A DNA stretch of 64,000 nt from Podarcis bocagei (GCA_964188305.1 OZ076896.1), one strand, 5' to 3'; counted from the first letter of the stretch, positions 7,361-47,657 are shown. Notes: generated from the letters alone by a model not told the origin. Program-made: numbers and translations.

Positions 7361-7696
7361 CAGCCTCGTGGGCTTGCTGCTCAGAAGGTCGGTGGTTCAA
7401 ATCCCCACAAAGGGGTGAGCTCCTGTTGCTCAGCCCCAGCTCCTGTCAACCTAGTAGTTCAAAAGCATGCCAAAAAGTGCAAGTAGACTAACAGGTACCA
7501 CTATGGCGGGAAGGAGTGCTCTGGTTTCGGTGTTCTGCTGCCCCAGAAGCGGCTTTGTCATTCTGGCCACATGACCCGGAAAAACTGTCTGTGGACAAAC
7601 GCCAACTCCCTCGGCCTGTGGAGCAAGATGAGCGCCGCAACCCCAGAGTTGTCTGCGACTGGACTTAACTGTCAGGGGTCCTTTACCTTTACCTTT
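7361..7696 (+). mobile_element. Sauria (Squam1) SINE, 5'-truncated
   Basis: Matches full copies; ends GGGGTCCTTTACCTTTACC. Confidence 0.88.
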
Positions 7697-9437
7697 TTAG
7701 GTCAGCGAAGCTGGTTTGCGTAAGGCAGCCCAGGGATTCCTTGTCTGGCACATTTCTGCAGCTTGTACTTTCATCCATATCCCAATTAATCAAAATCTAC
7801 AATTTATTAATTTCTAGGGTTTGGGGGGGGGTCCCCTCCCAAATCTATAACACCGGGCATCAAACAACCCATGTTGTTTGTATCTCTCTCTGTTCCTGTC
7901 AATGTCCTCATGATGACTATGGTTTAAACCAGGGATGAGCAGCCTGATTTCAACCGGGAGGAGGAAGCCTGGAAGGAGAGAAGAAATATGGGAGGAGCTG
8001 AAAGGAAACACTGGGAGGAGGAAGGAGGAAACCCATCTGCAAGTGATGGCTTCAGACCTCTGGCAAAAATGACCTGCCCGTCCCCTGGCAGCCCACTGTG
8101 CGGAGAAGGAGGGATAGAGAAAAGGGCTGGCAGTGGGGTGGCTCTGAACTAGCCCAGTTTCAGCCCTTCCCACCAGTCGCAGGTGATCCATCCTGAGATT
8201 ACAGACCTTTATTGTAAAAAAAGGTTTCCTGCTTTTGTTTTAGATTAGATAAACTACTCTAGCACTGAATGCGATGTAGGGAGAGAATTCCTGCAAGGAA
8301 GAATCTGTCCGAGAAGCTATGATTAAATGATATATTAAATACTGGATATGCCCATTGAAAGTTCAGTGTGACCAACAGATGGAAGCAGGAAACTGATGCT
8401 TTAATATAAATTAAATTGTCCATAGGAATGGAAGAGTCTTGGACCGAAGCCGCCATTAAGATACTGAGTTTTGCTGATTAGCTCATCTGCTTTATCTATG
8501 TGAACATTATGCTATAAAAATATTCTTTTATGATAGTATCTTAAGGGCACATGGATGGGGGGGATGTTGAATATATTTACATTATTTAAAGTAGATTGCT
8601 ACTATGCGGTCTATGCACTTGCAGAAGTTTAATTCGATAGGAGTTTTGCAGAAGTTCCTAATAGATTATGCCCAGTGCACAAATATTCTCACGTCAAGTG
8701 CCTGTTGCTCTAGAACTTATAAGAAGCTCAGTTTTAACTTGCCTATAGCCTTCTAGTGCTTAATAGTTTTTTTGCTTGACTACACCATAGTAATTTCTTT
8801 AAAATGCAGGCTTAACTGCTATGGTTAGCTGCTTAGGCTGGGCAAATTAAATTAAGCCTCTGGCATATGATTTAAGCTTTGTTTCAGCTAATTGAGCATC
8901 TAATGGGTGAGGATGAATATGAGCTATACAGAGAAATATTGTTTTTCAAAGTTTTTCCGATTAACAACCATTCAGATGAGTTAACAGGAGCATTTAAGCA
9001 GACACTTGCGCAAGCAAGTTTAAAATGAATCGTTGAGCCTTGCAGAATACTGTCATTGTATGAAGTGTACTCTGAGATATTCTCCCTGTCTCACTTCCCC
9101 TTTTCATTCCTCTGTTTTATACGTTAGTAGTGAATAGCCTGTTGGTTTTTATTGGCCATAAGCATGGTCAAACTTTCTTCCTAACCTCACTTCTCTTGCT
9201 GCAATTGGCCGATCTGTTGTGATGTCACAGAAGCTTTTGTTGTTCTTGGATGTTTAGACAGCTGCCTTACCCTAGACTTGCAAGAGCTGTAGTGACATCA
9301 ATGGAGCTGATGCAGCTCATGGTACTTTTGTTATCTGCCATTGGTCAGCTGCTGTGACCACATAGAGGACATTGCAAGCCTGTTTAGGGCAACAGGTAAT
9401 GCTACTAGGGCCGTGTGAGGAAAGGGAAGAAACTTTA

Positions 9438-14526: not shown

Positions 14527-14858
14527 GGGTGCTGTGGGCTAAACCACAGAGCCTAGGGCTTGCCGATCAGGTGTTCGGTGGTTCGAATCCCCGCGACAGG
14601 GTGAGCTCCCGTTGCTTGGTCCCAGCTCCTGCCAACCTAGCAGTTTGAAAGCATGTCAAAGTGCAAGTAGATAAATAGGTACTGCTCCGGCGGGAAGGTA
14701 AACGGCATTTCTGGTTCGCCAGAAGCGGCTTAGTCATGCTGGCCACATGACCCAGAAGCTGTATGCCGCCTCCCTCAGCCAGTAAAGTGAGATGAGCGCT
14801 GCAACCCCAGAGTTGTTGGCGACTGGACCTAATGGTCAGGGGTCCCTTTACCCTTTAC
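14527..14858 (+). mobile_element. Sauria SINE
   Basis: B-box GGTTCGAATCC, (TTTACC) tail, TSD TACCATAGTT. Confidence 0.9.
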
Positions 14859-23090: not shown

Positions 23091-23625
23091 CACTGTATTC
23101 TGCTCTGGTCAGACCTCACCTGGAGTACTGTGTCCAGTTCTGGGCACCACAGTACAAGAAGGACACTGACAAACTGGAACGTGTCCAGAGGAGGGCAACC
23201 AAAATGGTCAAAGGCCTGGAAATGATGCCTTATGAGGAACGGCTAAGGGAGCTGGGCATGTTTAGCCTGGAGAAGAGGAGGTTAAGGGGTGATATGATAG
23301 CCATGTTCAAATATATAAAAGGATGTCACGTAGAGGGAGAAAGGTTGTTTTCTGCTGCTCCAGAGAAGCGGACACGGAGCAATGGATCCAAACTACAAGA
23401 AAGAAGATTCCCCCTAAACATTAGGAAGAACTTCCTGACAGTAAGAGCTGTTCGACAGTGGAATTTGCTGCCAAGGAGTGTGGTGGAGTCTCCTTCTTTG
23501 GAGGTCTTTAAGCAGAGCCTTGACAACCATATGTCAGGAGTGCTCTGATGGTGTTTCCTGCTTGGCAGGGGGTTGGACTCGATGGCCCTTGTGGTCTCTT
23601 CCAACTCTATGATTCTATGATTCTA
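23091..23625 (+). mobile_element. CR1 LINE 3' end in intron 21
   Basis: [37 protein letters not shown]; (ATTCTATG)n tail. Confidence 0.95.
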
Positions 23626-23821: not shown

Positions 23822-25602
23822 CTGCAAAACAAAAGGAGAAATTGTGGACAAAGGGGGTGGGAAGAGGAGGAAAGAACTGTAGAGTCTGGGCAGAGGCACA
23901 AACTTTAGAATCGTGACTGAAACTGCTAGGAAATTGACAAGTTACTCGGGAGCCCAACATTGCATAACTTCACTGATTATTGCTATGATTTTAGACCTCA
24001 GTTATATGGCTATAACAGGTTCAGTCACATACATAATTTTAATTACTATACTAAAACTTAGAAGATTTTGGCATACATAGCAGTTATATCCCAAAATGCA
24101 TGTGTGCAGGAATACAGATGTTATCTGAAGCAGGTTATGGGCTAATAAACAGCTCAGTAAGATGAACAAAGCATCTGTTACTTTATATACCATTAGATTC
24201 ACTTGGCAGTGGCACTAAAAACTAAGCCAGAAATTCAGGCAAAATAACCTCCCACATAACTAAAACAGTGCATACGATTGTACAAAAAGTAAGTGTCTAA
24301 GCTTTTTTAGTTGTTTTTTTTAAAGGATTCAGGAGCCTACAATGTTAGCAGGCACATACAATAGCTCTTCTAAAAGGCAGAAGATGGGAATACATGATAG
24401 GTGTGCAAAATATGTACATTTTTTTTGAAGCAGAAATCTCAAAAACCATGCTCTCAGCTACTAAATGATATGGAAAACACCATTAGAGAAATTTACACAA
24501 AGAGCCATCCATGACTAGTAGCCTACATGAAGCTGTCTAATTAAAGCCAATTAAAACTAGTGGCCACCATCATATCTTATGGCAATAGTATGTTGTGCCC
24601 TGCACTGAAGTACATTTCTGGCATATCATCTATCCCTTTAATGATAGCAAAACAAATACGGCAGCGAATTTCAGCATGCCTACCTGTTGCCCATTAAGCA
24701 AGATTGTCTGCTCTTTTTTTAGGCTTTTGCTTTAAAATATTTGTTTTTCTAAAGGCTGCCCACTATCCACCCCGTGTGTAAGAACACTTCTCCCTTTATT
24801 TATTTAACGCTGTGAACAGGAGCATGGCTATTTTATGACAAGACTTCATCACACCTTCCCTATTTTTGCAGGAGGGGAGGAAAGATGCTACTGCCGAGAA
24901 AGAGAGAACAGAGGCAAATGTTATCTGGAAAAGTCTTTTGGTTCTTCTTGATTACCAAAATTCATCTTATTCTCTGTCTAGTTTAAATCTGAGTATTTTA
25001 ATGCTACTAATGAAAGATTGTAACATTTCGTAATTTCACATTGTCTTAAATAAATACGTTGACGTTTATCATTCCAATAATATGCATCATTAGGCAGAGA
25101 AATCTACAATTTTATTGTTCCTTGTACAAAAATGATGGTTTGTGGTCTATAAGGAAGCAGACATTTATCACTCTCTACTTCAGTAGACTCACATAACGAA
25201 AGCCCATACGTAGCATACACAGAGTTATTGCCCATAGAAATTAATTCTGTTTGTGGTGTAGAAAAGAAGTGACTGCATCTGTAAATCTACATTCATGGAA
25301 GTACATGTCACAAGCTAGGTTGCAAAGCAAAAGTAGGTAAGGAATTGTGCATCTCAAATAAATCATCCTAGTAATCAGACTCAAGCCCTTGCTCACTTCT
25401 CAAACTTACTTCTGCACTGCTCTTTGACACCAGAGAGTATCATTAACAGTGTCAATAATGCCAGGCACATTAGGAGTAAAAGATGCTAAGACTGTACTAA
25501 TTTCTTCAGAGACCCATTTCAGAAGTCTTGTAAAGGGGCTTTCTAGAAAGCAATAGTTTTGAGTATACTGAAATAACTATTTCAAACTTATTTCAAGCTT
25601 AC

Positions 25603-34579: not shown

Positions 34580-35918
34580 CTGTTAAGTGAAGGCAAAGAA
34601 AGGTTATTTTTTCCAATATCAAGAGCAGACATCCAAGTGTAAACAAAATTATTTGGTCCCCAAAGGATGACTTATACCAAGATCCTAAACTCACAACAGT
34701 GCTAGGAACTATTTTCTAATCAAAGCCAACATCCTTGTTATGAACAGACATGTGAAAATAATGGTACTCAAGAGAGCTAGATCTCATTTAGCAGGATTCT
34801 TTTCAGTTTATTAAATCCATGCTTTCCCTACAATAAAGCAGAACCTAGGACACAATATTAGCTACAATAGCTGCCTTTCAAATAAACTGTGTTCAGTCAA
34901 AGATTCCACTACATCAATTTATCCTCATTTTCTTCTATTCTAAGAAATTCAAAGGTAATGATGCAATCAAATTCTTCTACGTTTGAGAAACTTGAGGAGC
35001 AATGAATCAACAAAAAAATATTTTGGAGCAACAAACTATCCTTGTTTTAATCACTGCATGTACTCTTACTTGACTATATGAAGAACTGCAATGCTTTTCC
35101 TTAAAGCGGTTTCACACAAGACACTTACTTATATTTCAAGCAAGAGACAGAAAGGGAAATCAAGAACAGTTATTTTCTGCATGCTCAAACACTACAGCTG
35201 CATCCCCTCAGTAGGTTTCTTGTACTTCAGAAGTTGCAGGGGGAAAAATGTTTTCATTTTTCACTTTTAGGAAACTCTTACAAAAAGCATAAGGATTATA
35301 GCAGGGGAAAAATGTTGATGGAAATTCCACAGAATTTTATGAAATTGGAGAGCCAAGAGAATTTGAAAGGAAACATAACCTGGATTCTCCTTTTCCAGAG
35401 TGACAAACAAAATAACTTATTTTATGTTCAGAGAATTGTTAACTTCAAACTTACACATTCTGCTCTGACTTCTCACAATCAGGAAAAACATAATTAAACT
35501 AAATATTTGAAACGAAAAATTGATATTTTTTTGTCACTTTGGAACTATAACCTGGATTAAAAGAAAGCTTTAGTAGGACTACAATCCTATACCCAAAAAT
35601 TTCTTAGGAGCAACCTTCAAGAAATTAAAGTGAGCTTACTTCCAAGTAAACACACATGATGTAGTAATTTTATGCACCTTCCAAGTCTCAAATGCATAGG
35701 TATCTCATTGCTATTTATAAAGGGGGAGACAATAATCAAATCCCAAAGTTAAAATTATTACTTGTATAGTTTAAAAAATTTCCCAAATACATTATCTAGC
35801 AACAGTTGTAGATGACTGAATTCCTTTTTTGTTTGTCATTTGTACTACTGCTTCCCACATACAAAATATTCCCATGCTTGTTCAATACAAGTTCATAGAG
35901 GTATTACAAATAGCTTAC

Positions 35919-36084
35919 CTGGTATGCATCGTATGTTATTTTAGCAGCTCCATCCCATACTGCGGTAAGCTGGACCACAACTGGTCTTCCAGAAGGAGAC
36001 AATACTTTAACTCGAGGTGTATTCACGTAGACTGAAACCACTGATGAGCGTTCTTGTTCTGTAGGGTTATAAATCAAAAGGTAC
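35919..36084 (-). CDS. MAN2A1: MAN2A1 exon 13 (166 nt)
   Basis: TTGCAG|GT...CAG|GTAAGC; YLLIYNPTEQERSSVVSVYVNTPRVKVLSPSGRPVVVQLTAVWD. Confidence 0.95.
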
Positions 36085-37862
36085 CTGCAAGAAATGTTGC
36101 CAGATCTTTACAAAAACAAAGTTATTTGATCAAAGACTTCTTTTTTCACCTGAATTACCAAGCTAGGAAATTATACCAAGAAAACAAAAAGAATACATGG
36201 GCACAATGCATCTAGATGCACAATGCATCTAATATGCTAGCTAGATATTAAGAGTTTTTCTTTTAAGAACACTTTTGAAGAGAAAATACTGAAAAGTTCT
36301 TGGCAAATCTTTTTCAGATAAATCTATTCATTTACCAGTCACCTTAAGTGTTTCATGTCTAGAGCCTCAAAATACAGTTTAATATGGTGTGTATATTCTC
36401 TTAAAAGCATATACAACTTGTTGAAATTACTTTATATCATTGGGTTGGGGTTCAGATGAGCTTCCTCTGTTGGAGGAAACATTTTCCTCCTTCAGAAAGG
36501 TGCTTTTGAGATCTATCTGCAAAACACTGAATATCACCCAACAAACGAAGCCAAGTATTGTAGCTGAATCAAAGAACATCTGGACAGTTGCTATTTCTTA
36601 GCCCAAACCACAAGCAATTAGTATAGAAAGAAACGATGCAGCTATATCTTAAAATATGCATTCACATAAATTAAAAAGGGGAAAAAACTGTTGGAATATA
36701 ATGAAAACACTGGTATACATTTTATCAATTTCTGTTCTTACACTTTCTATCACACTACTTTGTCTCAGTTACTTAACTTCCTAGGTGATTTCTTGCAAGA
36801 GTGCATTTGTAAGCTGCACTGGTCAATGTGAATATACTGACATGACCTCTATTTAAAAGGTTGATATTTAAAGAATCCAAAAAGTTAAAATCAACTGAAT
36901 CACCCTTTCCCAATAAAATTCATCCAAAATTAACCTGAGAACAATGGCAAAGAAGAGCATTTATACTGCTAAACATCCAGATACCCCTTGTTTGAGTTAC
37001 TCCCCATGTTCACTGGCATCTAAGAGACATGCAACTCACGTGTGACCGTGTATACATGCAGTGACGGGAAATAAATAATTCGATTCAAACTAGAAAGGAG
37101 TTCTTGTGGCTCACGAAAAGACTAACCCCAGAGCCGGAAGAGGGTATCAGTGGAGGTGGAGGAAGCCCTGAAGAGACTGGACTTGGTTTATGCTGCTTAG
37201 CCTCCCCGCCTAACAGTTGATGTGTGTGGTAGCGCAGCCGCCGCTGCCACCACTTTCCTACACATCTCTCCTGCCAGCTCCACAATTCTAGTTGTGGATA
37301 TTTTTGGATAAAGCATTCCCCCCCCCCCCAGTATGGATTGAGGAGAGTGGCAGAGATGGCATTTAAAGGGTGCTCCCCACGTCACACAACTTCACTTATG
37401 CACACGCGGGCCTGCAATGTAACCCCCACGTAAGTGGGGGGTGCCTGTACTAGTGAAACTCATCACGACGACGTGGTTATATATATGCATCACCCAGTTT
37501 TTCATCTCACCACTAGGAAGTACCAGCATGCCTTAAGCCTTGGCCTTCTCAAGATTTATTCTGTTCTCTGTACAAGAGAACTTATCTTACTCATTCAAAT
37601 GTAGAACTACAGTTGTCTCTAACTTTACATGAGCTGCAACAAATTATGAGACACACCGCTTGCACTTCAACAGTTCAATCTAAGACACAAATATTAAAAA
37701 TTATGACATAAAATTTTCTATGGAAAAAAATGACAGGAAATGTGTTGGGGTTTTTTTGCATATTATTTTTATGTAGTGTAAATTCAATGTCCTTCATAGA
37801 CATAGCCAGCCTAGGCTTGCATAGACTATGTAGATGCTTGATTCTGAGATATATTATTATTA

Positions 37863-38031
37863 CCGTATTTTTCGCTCTATAACACGCACCCGACCATAAC
37901 ACGCACATAGTTTTTATAGGAGGAAAATCCATAGGCATGCCACCCGTAGGCATTCCCTCCATAACACGCACAGACATTTCCCCTTACTTTCTAGGAGGAA
38001 AAAAGTGAGTGTTATGGTGCAAAAAATACGG
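37863..38031 (+). mobile_element. MITE family C, second copy
   Basis: About 3 substitutions relative to the 32504 copy; TA TSD. Confidence 0.9.
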
Positions 38032-38132
38032 TAATTATGTGGTGTCATCTATGTACATGGTGCTTTCCAAGGAATGGGAGAACAGATCCCTACCTCAAAG
38101 TTGCCTCTAATCTCTCTGAATTTTAATGCCTG

Positions 38133-38135
<3 letters not shown>

Positions 38136-38181
<46 letters not shown>

Positions 38182-38385
38182 TTTTATTTTTACCCCACCC
38201 TTCTGGCTAGTTTCTAGGCATCTTACAACATCAACTTATCTAAAACATAATAAAAACATCAATCCTTATAAACCTCCCTATACAGGGCTGCCTTCAGATG
38301 TCTTGTAAAAGTCAGATAGTTGTTTATTTCCTTGACATCTGAAGGGAGGGCATTCCACAGGGAAGGTGCCACTACTGAGAAGAAT
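38136..38385 (-). mobile_element. L2 3' fragment with (TTA)n tail
   Basis: Reverse complement of the CAGATGTCAAGGAAATAAACAACTATCTGAC region of the 6541 copy. Confidence 0.75.
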
Positions 38386-38421
38386 TTCACAACAGAAATT
38401 CAGGCCATATAAGAACTTAAT

Positions 38422-38453
<32 letters not shown>

Positions 38454-38474
38454 CCTACCTACCTACCTACCTAT
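38422..38474. repeat. Compound (TCTG)n(CTAC)n microsatellite
   Basis: Direct reading. Confidence 0.9.
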
Positions 38475-40767
38475 CTTCTTCAGCATAGTGTCTTTAAGAG
38501 ATAGTGATACAAAAGGAAAACCAAGTGACAACTTGTTCTTGTTTCCACCTCATCTGAACAGCAATTTAAAAATAACTGCTGCTTGAAACTGTCCTTGAAT
38601 CTCCAAGCAGTGCAGATGTGGAAGTCCTATGTCAGATTAAAAACAAAGATGCATATGAACAGGAAGTTGCAATGCAGAGATATTATCCAAAGCCACTCTC
38701 TGGTGGGGGAAGGTCAGAGAATAATTTAATGATAAATGTACCTAGAACCCCCAAAAGTTGAGGTCAACCAAACTCAACCACGTATTAAAATGTAACTGGG
38801 GAACAAACAGAAGGGAAGGTGAAAGAGGAAATTAGGAGTCCATTAAGAAGAGAAAACCTACATTGTGATTTTAGTCAAGAATTAAGCCCGCAATTTGGGA
38901 AATGAAAACACCATGCAAACAACAGGGCGCGTCCTGTCAATTTCAGGTACACAATTGTGTGTTTTACATTTATGACTAATACAGCTCTGCGATGCTATTT
39001 TTAAAGCTTTGCATCAGGTCCATCACTTAAAACATCATGTCACCTGTAACAAGATAGAAATCTACAATAAAAATCAAGACACCACACTCACAAAAGACTC
39101 TACTTCACTCATACTATGTGGCACAGCACAACATCCACCCATGTGGAAAGACAAATGCTAGATGTAACCCACCCACAAAAAAAACAAGCATGGAGGCAGG
39201 TTTACTGAAGGAGGCTTTTCGTACCATCTAAAAAGGTCCCGTTAAAACTGGACTTAAGACAAGAACTCGGAGAAACTGAACATCTACCTCTGTTTCAGAG
39301 GCAATAGGCAGCTGTGCTGCTCTCACCATTCAGAGCACTTCTTTGTGGCACTGCCTCAGGGTCTATTTGCTGGAATTGATTTCTTCCTTCAAAAATTTAA
39401 AATTGCTCTCCTGTTTCCATCAGCCAGAAAGACCCTGAAGAAAAAAATTTCCAGTCAGAACATTTTACCCCAGAATCAGTAGTGAGGCTCGGCCTAGTCC
39501 ATCATTAAAGTGCTCTCCAAAATGCCAATTTCTCCTCACACCACTAAGTTTTGTCTGACTCTTATCTGCCACATTCCACGGAAATAACTCTATTCTGGAA
39601 GGTACCTGAGCTTTGGGCTCATGCACTAAAACTGATGGTAGCCACCATTAGAGATTTCACGAACAAGAAAATGCCCCTTATGAAGTCCTAGGGACATTAG
39701 CAGTACAAGCAAATAGCAAATTATGAGGTCATAAAGATCTGATTGCCCACACACAATAGTAACAGAACAGATGTTATCAAAAAGATTCCCGAAGAACATT
39801 TTCCAGAGACAGACGCCACCACCTGCTGCTCTTAACCTTTTTCAAGAAAAACACTTACCTCTATAGTGCCAGAGATACTTTCAAGCAGAATTCTTACATA
39901 AACATATGCCCGGACATGGCATCATATAAATTGCAACTAGGATTAAATTTCATCAAATCTGCTCTGAAGCAGGAAAATTTAATGAAACCCCTTCAATGAT
40001 ATAGTACTATATCTTCCAGTGTTTTGATTATGCAACAGCCAAATAGTTTATTGTGATGATGATTCTAATAGTAGTAGCAGCAGTAATTATTATTTCTTCA
40101 GTGGTCACAAGATATAGAAATAAAGTGCAAGGTTGAGAAAAAGGCAAATGTCTGCTTCTGAGAAAGCAAAGATGCTCTACTGTTAGGGGACCATGAATAT
40201 TAATGTAAGGTCATATGCAACCTCACACCCAAAATCTCATCTCTCAAAGCCTCAGCATATAAGTCAAAAGCCATCAATATAAATGTTTTTAATATCTCTG
40301 CCAAAAGTAGGGAAAAAACACCTGAATAAGAGCTAATGTATTTAAACTCGAAAATGATGCCCACAGAGAAAGAAAGAATGAAGTCCAAACTTGAGCAGGT
40401 TTCTCATGCAAATTGTACAAGGGAAAATGAAGCAACATTACAAAATCTGTTCAACTACATGTATTTCCATACATTAACATGTACGCAAAACAAGAGACTA
40501 ATGGCCAAAAAAAAAGAACCGCCATGACAACACTCCTTCATGGAACTGAGCTGAGGCCTAAAGGCTTTCATATGCACACCCCACACTATTTTGCCCAATC
40601 ACACTGCAAATATGATACACAATTCAGGTGATGAGATTGGGCTTTTGAGCATTGACAGCAATATTATAACCAATATTCATATACTACTTACATTCATATA
40701 ATATATGAATTTAAGTCCTAAATGGCATAGGATCTAAATATTTGATGGGCTGTCTGCTCCCATATAA

Positions 40768-41131
40768 GGGACGCGGGTGGCGCTGTGGTCTAAACCACAG
40801 AACCTAGGGCTTGCTGATCAGAAGGTCGGTGGTTCAAATCCCTGCGACGGGGTGAGCTCCCGTTGCTCGGTCCCAGTTCCTGCCAACCTAGCAGTTCGAA
40901 AGCACGTCAAAGTGCAAGTAGATAAATAGGTACCTCTCCGGCGGGAAGGTAAACAGTGTTGCCGTGTGCTGCTCTGGTTCGCCAGAAGCGGCTTAGTCAT
41001 GCTGGCCACATGACCCGAAAAACTGTCTGCAGACAAATGTCGGCTCCCTCGACCAGTAAAGCAAGATGAGCGCTGCAACCCCAGAGTCGTCTGCGACTGG
41101 ACCTAACAGTCAGGGGTCCCTTTACCTTTAC
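40768..41131 (+). mobile_element. Sauria SINE, full length
   Basis: About 15-bp TSD CTGCTCCCATATAAG. Confidence 0.94.
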
Positions 41132-41414
41132 CTGCTCCCATATAAGATTTCCTGAAAATGACAATCAGGTGAGTATGCCCTCTTAATGGTGCTAAATTTG
41201 CATTATGAACCAAGAGTGTGAGTGTGTGTTTTCAGCACCTTTTTGGGGAATGTTCTCTCCTCACAGATCTGACAAGTGTCAACCCTGGCGGGTTTTTGGT
41301 GCCAGTTAAAAACCATTTTTATCCACTCAGGTTTTGGGCAGAACTAGTTGTGGGGGTAGGCAGCTTTTCCCTGCTGGAATCACTGGTATGTGATATGTGA
41401 TTATGGGTTTATGT

Positions 41415-42642: not shown

Positions 42643-45014
42643 GACACATACGTACGTGTTCGAAACTCCCATTGTTCTAGGCGCATTTTGCAACAGGGAA
42701 CTTCATTAGGGTGAGCAGTTTTTTAGTTCTGGGTGCAGTACTGCGACTAATTCAGATTAAAATTGCAGAGTGGAAGGAAAAGTGGGCCTTTTTCTGCCTC
42801 CCCACTTCCAGCTGCTCTCTGAAGACTGGGGAAGAGACCCTCTTAAGAATATTAGAGGGGTGGGCAGGGGAAGGACTAGACCATGTGAAAAATGATTGTA
42901 ATATTTTAGCAGCAATTCATTCATTTTCAGCTTTGTATTCTTGTTATTAAAAAAAGTGTGCCTGGACATTCTGTTGTTGCATCCATAACCTAGATTTAAG
43001 GAGCCATTTAGCTCCTAGCTTTCATATCTCTGTTTCTAATACTGCACAAACACTCATGGTTGGTGAACATATGCTGCTGTCCCTATTCTTTCAACTATTT
43101 TCCTTATTAGGCAGTATAAAATAAAGCATAGTATTTTTCATAGCACAGGTGGTTCTCTTAAACTAGTATATTGTCTTGCTGCTGACCTAATGCCATAAAA
43201 CACAAGGTGAGGACTCCGAGCAAACCCAATGAAATCAGTTCACTTAACTATACCGATTTCAATGTCACTACACAAAGTACGTAGGTTACATATCATATCA
43301 CAGCTTGGGTGATAACCTATGGGGGGAAAAACTACTAATGGCAGCAAATGGCAATACATTAAAGTCCGGTTGATTTTCAAAGTTATGTAAGGACTCTCTT
43401 GCAACCTGAAGAGGCAGAACACACCCCCCAAAATGGCAAGATCTATAGGTAACCTGTAAGAAACTGAGTATGTCACAAGCTGTATGTCATCTACCACAAC
43501 CACCATGTATAAATATCAGCTAAATAAACAAGCATGAGCCTGAAAAAGATTTATTTATCAGCTGAATTCAACAGTAAAAATATTTCCTGAAAAATCACAA
43601 CAAAAAGCCTACAAACAGTATCTGACTACACACAAGTCTGGAAGGGGTAAAGCAAAGAGAGGCACTAGAAGAAATCTGATTAAAATTAAAGATAGCACAG
43701 ACCTCTGCCTGCTCTCTCCTGACGAGTTATGACAGTTCCTAGACTTTTTGACCTTTGCTGCATTTATTTATTGTAGTACAGTGGCCAAGAGCATAAATTA
43801 TGAAATGAAGGTTCTTGATTTCAAGCTCAAGTTTTTAGTACGGAATAATAAAGTTGTGCAAGCTTAAAAGACCGTTGTAAGAAATGGTTAAAAATGATAT
43901 TGGAAGTACTTTCAGCACACTGAGTAAAAGTTAGTTGAATACAATCCAGTGTACACCCACTGAAATTAATGGACCTAAGTTAGTCATGGTCATTAATTTC
44001 AATGGGTGTACTCTGGGTAAAAGTTAACTTAATATAACTTTTTATATTTCTATAGTACACTGCAGTAAATTTTACCCTTCTTAAGAAGTCAGAAACATGT
44101 ACCAAATTTTAAGCCAAACCTTTACAGAATCTTGAAGCCTATATTTTCCAACATCTTTTTAAAATGTCCTAAGCACTTTTCTTCAAATGTATCAAGGATT
44201 TCTGCAAATATTACAATTGTGGTAGAAGAATCAATAGGTGACATTCAAAGGTGTTTCCCACTTGTGGAATTAATATCCACTCACCTAATGGGACTTCTTT
44301 CCCCTGCAGCCCCAAAATTTGGTCTTGAACTGGCTCCCACTCTCAGACAAAAGACTCAGAGGACTCTCAACTCAGGAAATCCCAAAGGATTTATTGATAA
44401 TTCAGCACACAGTCTCAGTATCAGCTCAAGTACAGAATACATCGTTCATGAGAGTTCTAGGATCATGGCTAGGCATAAGCAGGCACCATCACAGGACCGG
44501 TCGGTTATGTGGTTCTCATCCCCAGCAAAAACCTTGCAAGGAAGCACTCCTACAAGGGGAGCTGCTGGGTCTGTTCAGATGGTGGCATGTCTTTTGTGAT
44601 GGGTACAGAGTCCAACTCCCTACCTCTAACTCAGCTGGCTTGGCCGAATGGCTACCTGCCTCCTTGGCTACCCTGGAAACTTTGTGCTCAGGAGACTGAA
44701 TAGGAACTGACCCAACAGACTCCTGCTCCCTTACAGAAGAATTCAGAAGCAGTGCCACACGACCCTCTTCTCCATCACTACTGGAAACTTCCCCACCCCC
44801 AGTTGAGGCTCTTGTCCTCTGACAGATCCTGCCATGCCTACCCTTGTCCTGGCTGTGGCCCATGACAGCTCCGAAGGTTGAGTTGAAAGACCCATGGCTG
44901 CAGATAAAGAAAGCCCTGCTGAATGCACTTGTGGCACTGGATAATCACCTAGTACCTACACCAGGTAATCAGACCATGGGTTTTTATCTAGCACAGATAT
45001 GCAAGAAAGATATA

Positions 45015-45254
45015 CAGTGGGACCTCGGGTTACATACGCTTAAGGTTACATATGCTTCAAGTTAGACTCCGCTAACCCAGAAATAGTGCTTCAGGTTAAG
45101 AACTTTGCTTCAGGGTGAGAACAGAAATCATGCTCTGGCGGCGCGGCGGCAGCAGGAGGCCCCATTAGCTAAAGTGGTGCTTCAGGTTAAGAACCGTTTC
45201 AGGTTAAGAATGGACCTCCGGAACGAATTAAGTACTTAACCCGAGATACCACTG
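45015..45254 (+). mobile_element. MITE family A
   Basis: TA TSD and TIRs. Confidence 0.88.
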
Positions 45255-45286
45255 TAACCGCATTGTCTGTTCCAAAATTAAGTTTA

Positions 45287-45530
45287 CAGTCATACCTCGG
45301 GTTGAAGTTTCTTCAGGTTGAGCGCTTTCGGGTCGCGCTCCATGGCGACCCGGAAGTAACGGAACATATTACTTCCAGGTTTCACCGCTCGTGCATACAC
45401 AGACGGTCAAAATGACGTCACGTGCATGCGCGAAAGTGGCGAATCGCGACTCGCACACACGGGTTGTGTTTACTTCAGGATGCGAACGGGGCTTCAGAAC
45501 GGATCCTGTTCGTATCCAGAGGTACCACTG
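45287..45530 (+). mobile_element. Tigger-like MITE related to family A, different CpG-rich interior
   Basis: TA-flanked; CAGTCATACCTC ... GAGGTACCACTG. Confidence 0.8.
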
Positions 45531-47589
45531 TACATGCATTTTTAACACCACCCATAGCCTCCTCATCAACATTATATCCAAGAAGACAGTTCTGATGTTT
45601 ATACAAACAATTCTGTAAGACAGGCAACACCTAAATTGCAACCTTTGCAAACTAACCAGACGTTCTATGGTGACAACCCATAACCCTCTGAAATGCTCTA
45701 CATCAGCCTCAACCTGGTGCCCTTCTGATGGTTTGGATACAACTCCCTTTGGCTCCAGCCATCCTATTTAGGACTAATGGGGGTTGTGCTTCAAACATCT
45801 GGAGTGCATCAAGTTGGCATGCAACCCTCTTGAGACCTATCAAAAATTACCTCGGACGTTCGTAAGCAGAAGGTAAGGCGGCTGTACAATCTTTGCTGAG
45901 CCTCAAAGTATTTATTGCTGAGCAATAAATACTTAAGCCGTACTTGGGCTAGACCACTCATTGCCTCTTCTCCCCCACTCAAGTATTATTGGTTACGGTT
46001 GCCATACCGAATGAGACTATCAAAAATGCTGATCTCATGGCAAAACAAAGCATGTGAAGAACTTCCATAGTCTAGAAAAGAGCAATTCAGAGTCTCCATG
46101 ACACTATTGGCAAACTATTGGTATTATTATTAGAAGCTGCACAAACACCACTTCCAGTTCCATTTCCTTCCAATTCCTCAGGTTAGAAAAGAGAAAGGGG
46201 TCATGACCACAGGTTTCATAGCCCTGCTTTGCTGAACGCAGGGCAGTACTATCAGGGCTACCCCTACGGCTGCAATCCCAGTACTAGTGGCCCTTATGAC
46301 AGCAACGGAGATATCTGCTGTAACTATTACCACAGACAACTAGGCAATTACAAAGTTTCAGTGTTATTCACTTCTGTACAAACTTGCACACAACATACTA
46401 ATTTAAAACACCACATTTCTGAACTAGATAAGATACCTATAATATTAATAAAGAGGTATTCCTAGTGTTTCTTCTTGAAATGAGCTAGAGTTCAACCCCA
46501 AAAAAGCATCAAACTGCAAATTCTGAAACACTACAGTAATCAATTCTTTCACCTAGTTTATTTGCTACCAATATTGTTGTTCAATATTGAGAAACACTGA
46601 AGTATATCAAGACATTATGCTACACAGATACTATGCAATAGTATAATACACAGTACACAGTATAGTATAGTACAGAGATACTATGCAATACTAAGACATT
46701 TCCAACCATAAGCAGTGTCAGCTTTTTTAAAAAAAAAAGAGAGAGAATAAATTATGTTTTGCTTAACCCTACTGCTCAGTGCTTCTGTGACTATTTCACA
46801 GCAGATTAAAAAGGCATTGTCATGGTTACCTTTCTTAGCTAGAGGTGTATCTATCACCTTCATTGTAGAGCTTTCAGCAGATGCTGAAGACACACCTCTT
46901 TACTTTGGTCTTTGACATCCTTTATTTATTTATTTAAACTGTGTTGGTTCATTATTTTAATGATATTGTCTGATACTAAATTGTATGACTATATTGTTGT
47001 AACTCGCCATGAGACATTATGGTGAGGGCTACGTAAGTAATCCTATAAATAAATATGTATTTAAGTGTCTGGTTATTAGAGCAGTTTTTCAAGCAAAGCA
47101 TAAGCTTTGAGATGAGATATAGATGGTACTTTGTTTTCTCAATGTTGCCCTATTGCTAAATCCTCAAATGTATTTCTTTTTAAAAAACAAACTATGGCTT
47201 TAGACTTGGCATATCAAAAAATGCAAACATAAATGAAATGACACTGCTTTGGGGGTTATCTATAACTTTTCTTCCTCCCACCCAAGCTTCCTATTCTAAT
47301 TTCTTCATAAATCATGAACTATCCTATTTTTATGGGTTAAATTTGCTTTATTTTTATTTCATAAAATGTATACACTGTAAATAAGAAAACCTCATCTCTA
47401 TTTACAAAAAAGGATAAAACATTAACTAAAAATTAATTTACTGCAACTATACCACCTTGATTTTGTAATTTTAGCAAGTCCTGTAATATCTCTCTGAAAC
47501 GGAATAGTTTCGTTTTTAAAAAAATCAAAACAATAGTAGAACTTTTAACATTCTGCGTATTCTCATGCATTAAGAAAGAAAGCATTTAC

Positions 47590-47657
47590 CTTGGCTGTTT
47601 ACTCAGTTCTATGACAGTCTTGTGTGGCAAAGAGTCCTGTGTAGACTGCGCATCATC
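47590..47657 (-). CDS. MAN2A1: MAN2A1 exon 12 (68 nt)
   Basis: GGAAG|GAT...CAAG|GTAAAT; DDAQSTQDSLPHKTVIELSKQPR; ends in phase 2. Confidence 0.93.

Follow-up and report, generated by a model that had tools for sequence, protein, structure and literature searches.

Golgi alpha-mannosidase II, the product of MAN2A1, commits N-glycans to the complex type, and its regulation is usually regarded as transcriptional. The Podarcis bocagei locus raises the question of whether splicing within intron 12 could also affect the output of this gene. A first-pass annotation had proposed a 105-nt cassette exon in this intron with two donors, one leading to a premature stop and the other to an in-frame insertion of 22 aa. 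We analysed this candidate, called element 12a here, in a 64-kb window (the whole stretch of DNA under study, which contains no N) and in other vertebrate genomes.

The assignment of the candidate to the exon 12/13 junction of MAN2A1 was confirmed. The Pfam GH38 N, middle, central and C domains are encoded in this order on the minus strand, and the product of exons 13 and 14 is 98% identical to the Podarcis raffonei protein named alpha-mannosidase 2, which establishes the identity of the gene and where the junction lies. It follows from the domain order that the catalytic and middle domains precede the cassette site. The inferred exon count fits the 12/13 numbering of a 22-exon gene, where the boundaries of all exons except 12, 13 and 14 were derived with a best-score rule that kept the frame consistent. 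The exon 12 peptide, DDAQSTQDSLPHKTVIELSKQP(R), agrees with squamate alpha-mannosidase 2 proteins. The flanking exons are as follows, with a slash marking splice junctions here and below.

47590 to 47657, minus strand: MAN2A1 exon 12, 68 nt, ending in ..CCAAG/GTAAAT with two bases of a split codon remaining (phase 2)
35919 to 36084, minus strand: MAN2A1 exon 13; its 35919 end is matched exactly by a spliced RNA contig of exons 13 and 14 (run X1)

Within the intron, the parts of 12a and a neighbouring conserved block are arranged in this way.

40170 to 40239, minus strand: conserved block A, upstream of 12a and alignable in skink and amphisbaenian
39964 to 39980, minus strand: pyrimidine tract and AG acceptor of 12a, ..TTTTCCTGCTTCAG/A, with the first exon base at 39963
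39859 to 39963, minus strand: element 12a, the candidate 105-nt cassette, non-coding and with two in-frame stops in this genome
39892 to 39900, minus strand: inner donor TAT/GTAAGA, which closes a 66-nt form at 39898; Podarcis-specific, splice-site score 4.7
39861 to 39863, minus strand: second in-frame stop, TAG, Podarcis-specific
39853 to 39860, minus strand: 5' splice site of 12a, AG/GTAAGT, within GAG/GTAAGT with the last exon base at 39859; the same in 8 of 8 species

The acceptor, both donors, the 66-nt form, the phase and the translation all agreed exactly with the first-pass annotation. Read from exon 12 in phase 2, 12a encodes RADLMKFNPSCNLYDAMSGHMFM followed by a stop, the first in-frame TAA (39896-39894) lying inside the inner donor. 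At least nine exon junctions lie downstream of the premature stops, and the distance from the TAA to the last of them exceeds about 50 nt. In-frame lengths result from three of the five GTs inside 12a. The placement of 12a in non-repeat sequence also held, as there is no second match elsewhere in the window and its contig depth is about 3, compared with thousands for true repeats nearby.

Splice sites were scored with a crude position weight matrix (PWM) modelled on published vertebrate tables, and the scores are rough. The 12a acceptor scored 10.1 bits, a value equalled or exceeded by 37 of 4305 AGs, and the donor 11.4 bits (8 of 3617 GTs); both are higher than the medians of the inferred real MAN2A1 sites, which are 7.5 for acceptors and 8.4 for donors. 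The inner donor scored only 4.7 bits, equalled or exceeded by 277 of 3617 GTs. By this crude matrix 12a has what a poison exon needs in silico, usable splice sites at both ends on the sense strand. In the 64-kb window, the minus strand has three loci with site pairs as strong as that of 12a and the plus strand has one, and a Markov null gave 0.43 such pairs per 64 kb. The composition of 12a is that of an intron. Its GC content is 0.352 versus an intron mean of 0.395, the rise in GC over the flanks is -0.008 versus +0.076 for real exons, and its trinucleotide score equals the intron mean and is lower than that of all 18 real exons. The in-frame stop proves nothing, because 88% of the 105-nt windows in intron 12 contain a stop in the exon 12 phase. 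Within one genome, the 12a motif pair is not beyond chance. Single-genome statistics alone would have labelled 12a a pseudoexon.

Nine squamate MAN2A1 loci were compared, namely that of the window and those of Lacerta agilis, Zootoca vivipara, Podarcis muralis, Rhineura floridana, Tiliqua scincoides, Anolis sagrei, Sphaerodactylus townsendi and Thamnophis sirtalis, with Xenopus laevis as an outgroup. Intron 12 is alignable end to end among lacertids, where 12a is 100% identical to its P. muralis counterpart and 97% identical to that of Lacerta. Almost nothing besides is alignable in intron 12 when the comparison is with skink, snake or gecko. Orthologues of 12a were identified by nhmmer in seven other squamates (E 7e-74 to 4e-14), with one collinear orthologue each in the amphisbaenian, skink, snake and gecko (E 6e-50 to 4e-14). 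In all seven, the orthologue is a single copy within intron 12 and lies upstream of the conserved intronic element described below, with the order unchanged. In Anolis, 12a had no nhmmer match, and the 900 nt preceding this conserved intronic element lack GTAAGT. Judged from these alignments, the conservation of 12a across squamates is beyond chance.

Conservation within 12a is centred on the donor. Of 221 positions in the eight-species alignment, 60 are invariant; the longest invariant run, AGGTAAGT (39860-39853, 8 nt), is the donor itself, and the next longest is 4 nt. The sequence AG/GTAAGT is invariant in all eight species, including gecko and snake. The 5' splice site of 12a is clearly under purifying selection. 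Seven of the eight species retain the acceptor AG; the snake reads CAA, with other AGs close by. Splice-site conservation had been put forward by the first-pass annotation as a check on its proposal; across the squamates compared, the outer donor is invariant, the acceptor AG is mostly kept but in a strong acceptor only in lacertids, and the inner donor occurs in Podarcis only.

Coding capacity is not conserved. The 12a lengths over the eight species are 105, 105, 105, 85, 92, 81, 105 and 87 nt, with a 20-nt deletion in Zootoca, and exon-body identity to the distant species is just 50-65%, with indels. The frame is likewise not conserved and the peptides are unrelated. An in-frame stop is present in seven of the eight species, the exception being Lacerta. 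The Podarcis TAG (39863-39861) is CAG in both Lacerta and Zootoca, and with CAG in this position the whole 105 nt is open in Lacerta. Thus, neither the multiple-of-three length nor the open frame of an in-frame coding cassette is kept across the eight species. On this evidence, 12a is a conserved, non-coding, splice-site-centred element of squamate MAN2A1 intron 12 rather than a random pseudoexon, and it is plausibly a cassette of the type coupled to nonsense-mediated decay (NMD). With the donor invariant in eight of eight species and the acceptor AG in seven of eight, a stop-carrying NMD-type cassette is a reasonable reading.

A far more strongly conserved element, which the first-pass annotation had overlooked, lies about 425 nt downstream of 12a.

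38950 to 39579, minus strand: CNE, a highly conserved intronic element present in all nine squamate loci
39327 to 39434, minus strand: element 12b, the exon-like core of the CNE, 108 nt here (most species have 107 nt), containing an in-frame TGA at 39391-39389

The CNE was found by nhmmer as one copy per locus (E 6e-214 to 7e-132), and blastn aligned it at 75-90% identity to Anolis, gecko, snake and skink. Neither 12a nor the CNE was found in intron 12 of Xenopus laevis (1154 nt). Within the CNE, the 12b acceptor TTTTTTTCTTCAG/GG (11.5 bits, exon start at 39434) is invariant in seven of seven species and comprises an invariant 13-nt pyrimidine tract plus AG. The 12b donor, ATG/GTGAGA after 39327, scored 8.5 bits and is present in six of the seven species, and a distal alternative donor, GAG/GTAG after 39288, is present in all seven, as is the in-frame TGA. 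Identity of 12b to the window is 88-99%, with the gecko at 95%, and its core contains a GAA-rich stretch. The variable sites are spread evenly over codon positions (8/8/7), indicating that 12b is non-coding. Conservation of both the body and the splice sites marks the conserved class of poison exons, and 12b clearly shows it; by its sequence, 12b looks like a typical member of that class.

RNA from a close relative, about 1% diverged from the species of the window, was examined in four runs over the region 35850-40700. Exon 13 had about 7-9x coverage in runs X23 and X24 (stranded, raw reads), with the reads in the orientation that a minus-strand gene predicts. In the interval that contains 12a and 12b (38442-40700), these two runs gave 0 reads and 0 junctions, and the junctions that the first-pass annotation had named as a check did not appear at this modest depth. 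We estimate that such depth rules out only steady-state inclusion above roughly 15%; a rare or NMD-cleared isoform could have gone unseen. Run X1 is identified as RNA by a 940-nt contig (depth 110) in which exon 13 is spliced to exon 14 precisely at 35919. Over 12a this run has a single contig (39709-40052, depth 3) that is unspliced through both proposed splice sites and accounts for all of the depth in the 12a bins; over 12b, a contig (38997-39380) is unspliced through both donors. The depths of the contigs over the two elements, 3 and 10 versus 110 for exon 13, are those of intron background. Run X5, in which exon 13 is absent, is probably DNA.

Annotated proteins show the canonical junction. 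The spacing between exons 11 and 13 is exactly 23 aa (exon 12) in 93 of 107 full-length vertebrate MAN2A1 proteins, and an insert of 22 or 35 aa at the exon 12/13 junction occurs in none of the 107. Proteins that deviate from 23 aa look like mis-modelled entries, for example with read-through of a pyrimidine tract. Nine squamate proteins all read ..QPR/YLLIYNP or a close variant at the junction. The 90% cluster around the Podarcis protein contains RefSeq entries for three Podarcis species, Lacerta and Zootoca; these lacertid entries give one product each, of 1152 aa and with no isoform label, and the longer members of the cluster are canonical at the exon 12/13 junction. A word search for protein fragments with the cassette-encoded tail after exon 12 found none, and a word search with the exon 13 ORF for RNA-derived upstream splicing found one genomic-type fragment only. 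Searching representatives with exon 14 returned mostly fragments and two partial models, one of which led to the full-length proteins, and a PDB search with exon 13 returned nothing relevant. In the literature, we found no paper that ties MAN2A1 to poison, cryptic or NMD exons.

The explanation that we favor, to which we give about an even chance, is that 12a is a rarely included, stop-carrying cassette within a conserved intron 12 module of about 1.3 kb (40239-38950) centred on 12b, and that its inclusion, like that of 12b, leads to NMD. The constrained core of 12a is its perfect U1-type 5' splice site, and in lacertids the gain of a strong acceptor may have turned the element fully exon-like. 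Both 12a and 12b would be rarely included cassettes carrying stops. An mRNA that included either one would carry a premature stop many junctions before the last, and decay of this mRNA would lower the amount of Golgi alpha-mannosidase II. The comparisons establish the sequence features, the orthology, the conservation of the splice sites and the lack of conserved coding capacity; that the sites are used and that NMD follows is our inference. The poison-exon part of the original proposal thus survives in qualified form: the exon shape, a stop far upstream of the last junction and the invariant donor speak for it, and the RNA runs contributed no reads in its favor.

A broader version of this model is possible but doubtful, namely that the output of squamate MAN2A1 is tuned by an NMD-coupled two-cassette module in intron 12, in which a near-ultraconserved 12b with a fixed TGA is accompanied by a 12a strengthened in lacertids. 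If true, the module would act after transcription as a conserved throttle on hybrid-to-complex N-glycan processing, and in Lacerta 12a would additionally constitute an open 35-codon insert. A module with splice sites that is conserved through the whole of squamate history would suggest that decay coupled to splicing forms a second layer of control. To our knowledge, the class of gene to which MAN2A1 belongs is not known for poison exons. Elements 12a and 12b define exact junctions that can be sought in RNA.

Conserved poison cassette exons coupled to NMD are known from SR-protein genes, and conserved cryptic poison exons are reported from human introns (PMC11632617). Element 12b is a close fit to this class, being intronic and non-coding, with a stop, conserved splice sites and flanks, and 95% identity in the gecko. 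For 12a, the features in common are the conserved donor and the stop, but its body is poorly conserved and its acceptor is mostly weak. The MAN2A1 elements also differ in that they are known here from sequence. In addition, hosts of poison exons such as the SR-protein genes encode RNA-binding proteins, whereas MAN2A1 encodes a Golgi glycosidase; as the host is not an RNA-binding protein, there is no obvious autoregulatory logic. MAN2A1 does not occur in the part of the supplement text of PMC11632617 that was available. Comparable in setting are SCN1A exon 20N and the ATM NMD switch exon (NSE), mostly skipped deep-intronic cassettes whose inclusion lowers productive mRNA (PMC11981616, PMC4702124). 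Like the MAN2A1 elements, these are deep-intronic and reside in genes that do not encode splicing factors. The SCN1A and ATM exons are backed by RNA together with disease variants or antisense work, whereas the MAN2A1 elements are backed by sequence and conservation.

The cassette reading of 12a has to be weighed against four others. Unlikely, though deserving of attention, is the explanation that the 12a donor binds U1 within the intron as a decoy or regulatory 5' splice site and thereby controls splicing of 12b or processing of the long intron, and that the 105 nt never enter stable mRNA. Donor-only conservation fits a U1 site nearly as well as it fits a cassette. The donor alone is invariant and strong in every lineage, while the acceptor, with a PWM score of 10.1 in lacertids, is weak elsewhere (4.8 in Rhineura, 3.6 in Tiliqua, 1.5 in Sphaerodactylus and -5.2 in Thamnophis, the snake in which it is lost); even so, seven of eight species retain its AG. 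Conservation of the body is poor, with many indels, but the flanks are conserved on both sides, as is usual for alternative exons. Inclusion was not seen in the RNA examined, which a U1 site would account for, as it would for the position of 12a upstream of 12b wherever 12a is present. Anolis, however, has 12b without 12a, indicating that 12b is not strictly dependent on 12a.

Vertebrate recursive splice sites and RS-exons resemble 12a in having a conserved consensus 5' splice site within a long intron. At a recursive splice site, AG and GT are juxtaposed and the donor is rebuilt after the first step. The acceptors read CAG/AGCA at 39963 (12a) and CAG/GGTC at 39434 (12b), neither of which is AG/GT, and recursive splicing was rejected.

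We consider it quite unlikely that the whole of the conserved module (40239-38950) is a cluster of transcriptional enhancers in which the splice-like motifs are coincidental. Patchy conservation over 1.3 kb extends well past exon-sized units, as expected of enhancers, but the longest invariant run of 12a is exactly a consensus 5' splice site. Enhancers would likewise be consistent with RNA runs in which no splicing was seen at the elements and with sequence that belongs to no Rfam family and has no unusual fold (there were no Rfam matches at gathering score and no tRNAs, and the fold of the 12b core is unremarkable, z=-1.27). This explanation leaves aside the invariant 13-nt tract plus AG of 12b, its two conserved GT donors at exon-like spacing and its GAA-rich core, and the fact that the splice-like sites are all on the sense strand of the host gene. 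The lone Rfam match at E<=1 was to SNORA16, sub-threshold (E=0.86) and on the opposite strand.

Very unlikely in our assessment is that 12a is a chance pseudoexon without function, its conservation being due to hitch-hiking beside the constrained CNE. Pseudoexons may outnumber real exons about tenfold (PMC1935003), and MAN2A1 itself contains three that are comparable, filled with stops and equally strong or stronger (23266-23120, 24890-24684 and 44549-44285). Pseudoexons (PMC1935003, PMC8819188) and 12a are alike in their good sites, intron-like body, stops in all frames and lack of detected use, which in the case of 12a refers to the runs examined here. Ordinary pseudoexons are unconserved, however, whereas the 12a donor is unchanged across Squamata. 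The high identity among lacertids is not extreme, since among 105-nt windows 12a ranks in the top 10% against Lacerta and in the bottom quarter against Zootoca, but 12a is alignable to gecko, snake and skink (E=4e-14 to 5e-34), where neutral intron is not. A non-functional pseudoexon should show no conservation above neutral intron, and 12a does show it. Simple hitch-hiking does not explain this, because the roughly 300 nt separating 12a and the CNE are mostly unalignable in gecko, skink and Anolis.

The inner donor of 12a has a recent origin. The corresponding position reads GTATGA in Lacerta, Zootoca, Rhineura and Thamnophis and is deleted in Tiliqua, and GTAAGA and its TAA both arose from one T>A change in the Podarcis lineage. 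The 66-nt in-frame form is a by-product of this one recent substitution and not a designed switch. An exon with alternative 5' splice sites has two donors that are both competent and conserved, whereas the inner donor is weak, at 4.7 bits, and occurs in Podarcis only. The dual-donor proposal of the first-pass annotation, in which donor choice would decide between an enzyme extended by 22 aa and NMD or a truncated form, is therefore the least credible explanation and highly improbable: its arithmetic holds in P. bocagei and P. muralis (66 nt in frame, 105 nt with a stop), but length, frame and peptide are unconserved and no insert was found in the 107 proteins, the lacertid cluster or the reads. 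Only the cross-species comparison told the constrained parts, namely the 12a donor and the nearby 12b core, apart from accidental features such as the second donor and the 66-nt in-frame form.

A highly conserved element and a short conserved block lie in MAN2A1 intron 12, close to element 12a, the 105-nt cassette exon candidate.
38950-39579, minus strand: highly conserved intronic element, with squamate-wide conservation
39327-39434, minus strand: core of this element (12b), resembling a 107/108-nt poison exon
40170-40239, minus strand: short conserved block upstream of 12a, containing ..GATTTTGGGTGTGAGGTTG..

At the nucleotide level, conservation of the element appears to exceed that of the adjacent coding exons. 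Among the squamates compared, the acceptor of the 12b core was invariant and its donors were conserved, as was an in-frame TGA at 39391-39389. No counterpart of the element was found in Xenopus laevis, and a search for RNA support in low-depth RNA runs from a close relative found none. The upstream block is common to the skink and the amphisbaenian, and may be part of the same conserved module as 12a and 12b.

Three other pseudoexons in MAN2A1 served as internal controls for 12a, with splice sites scored using a crude PWM.
23120-23266, minus strand: pseudoexon in intron 21
24684-24890, minus strand: pseudoexon in intron 20
44285-44549, minus strand: pseudoexon in intron 12
By this crude measure the scores of all three were at least as high as those of 12a (e.g. 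14.3/12.1), and each contained stops in all three frames.

In UniRef, several bird and fish MAN2A1 models carry a short unrelated peptide in place of exon 12 (P0050, P0066, P0093, P0100, P0127, P0128, P0131, P0134 and P0123). This peptide looks like a translation of the pyrimidine tract upstream of exon 13, and the entries probably stem from faulty gene prediction and not from isoforms.

Repeats and variable sequences were also found.
37794-38441: two high-copy repeats
40809-41138: SINE-like element of ~330 nt
45090-45590: variable stretch of intron 12, ~500 nt

The repeat at ~37862-38040 is MITE-like in its terminal inverted repeats, which are of the type TACCGTATTTTT..., while that at ~38270-38400 is a SINE-like tail adjoining ATT and CAGA microsatellites. 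Contig depth across 37794-38441 was in the thousands and RNA reads were heavily piled up with loose ends; therefore, many genomic copies are expressed or embedded in transcripts. P. muralis, Lacerta and Zootoca lack the SINE-like element at the orthologous site (that bin had an identity of 0.00) but contain copies at other positions in their loci, suggesting that the element was inserted recently in the lineage of the window. Further similar copies, recognized by shared ORF peptides, lie near 14600-14850 and 7500-7700. The variable stretch is 92% identical in P. muralis and mostly missing from Lacerta and Zootoca; on this comparison it would be an insertion in the Podarcis lineage or a deletion in Lacerta and Zootoca.
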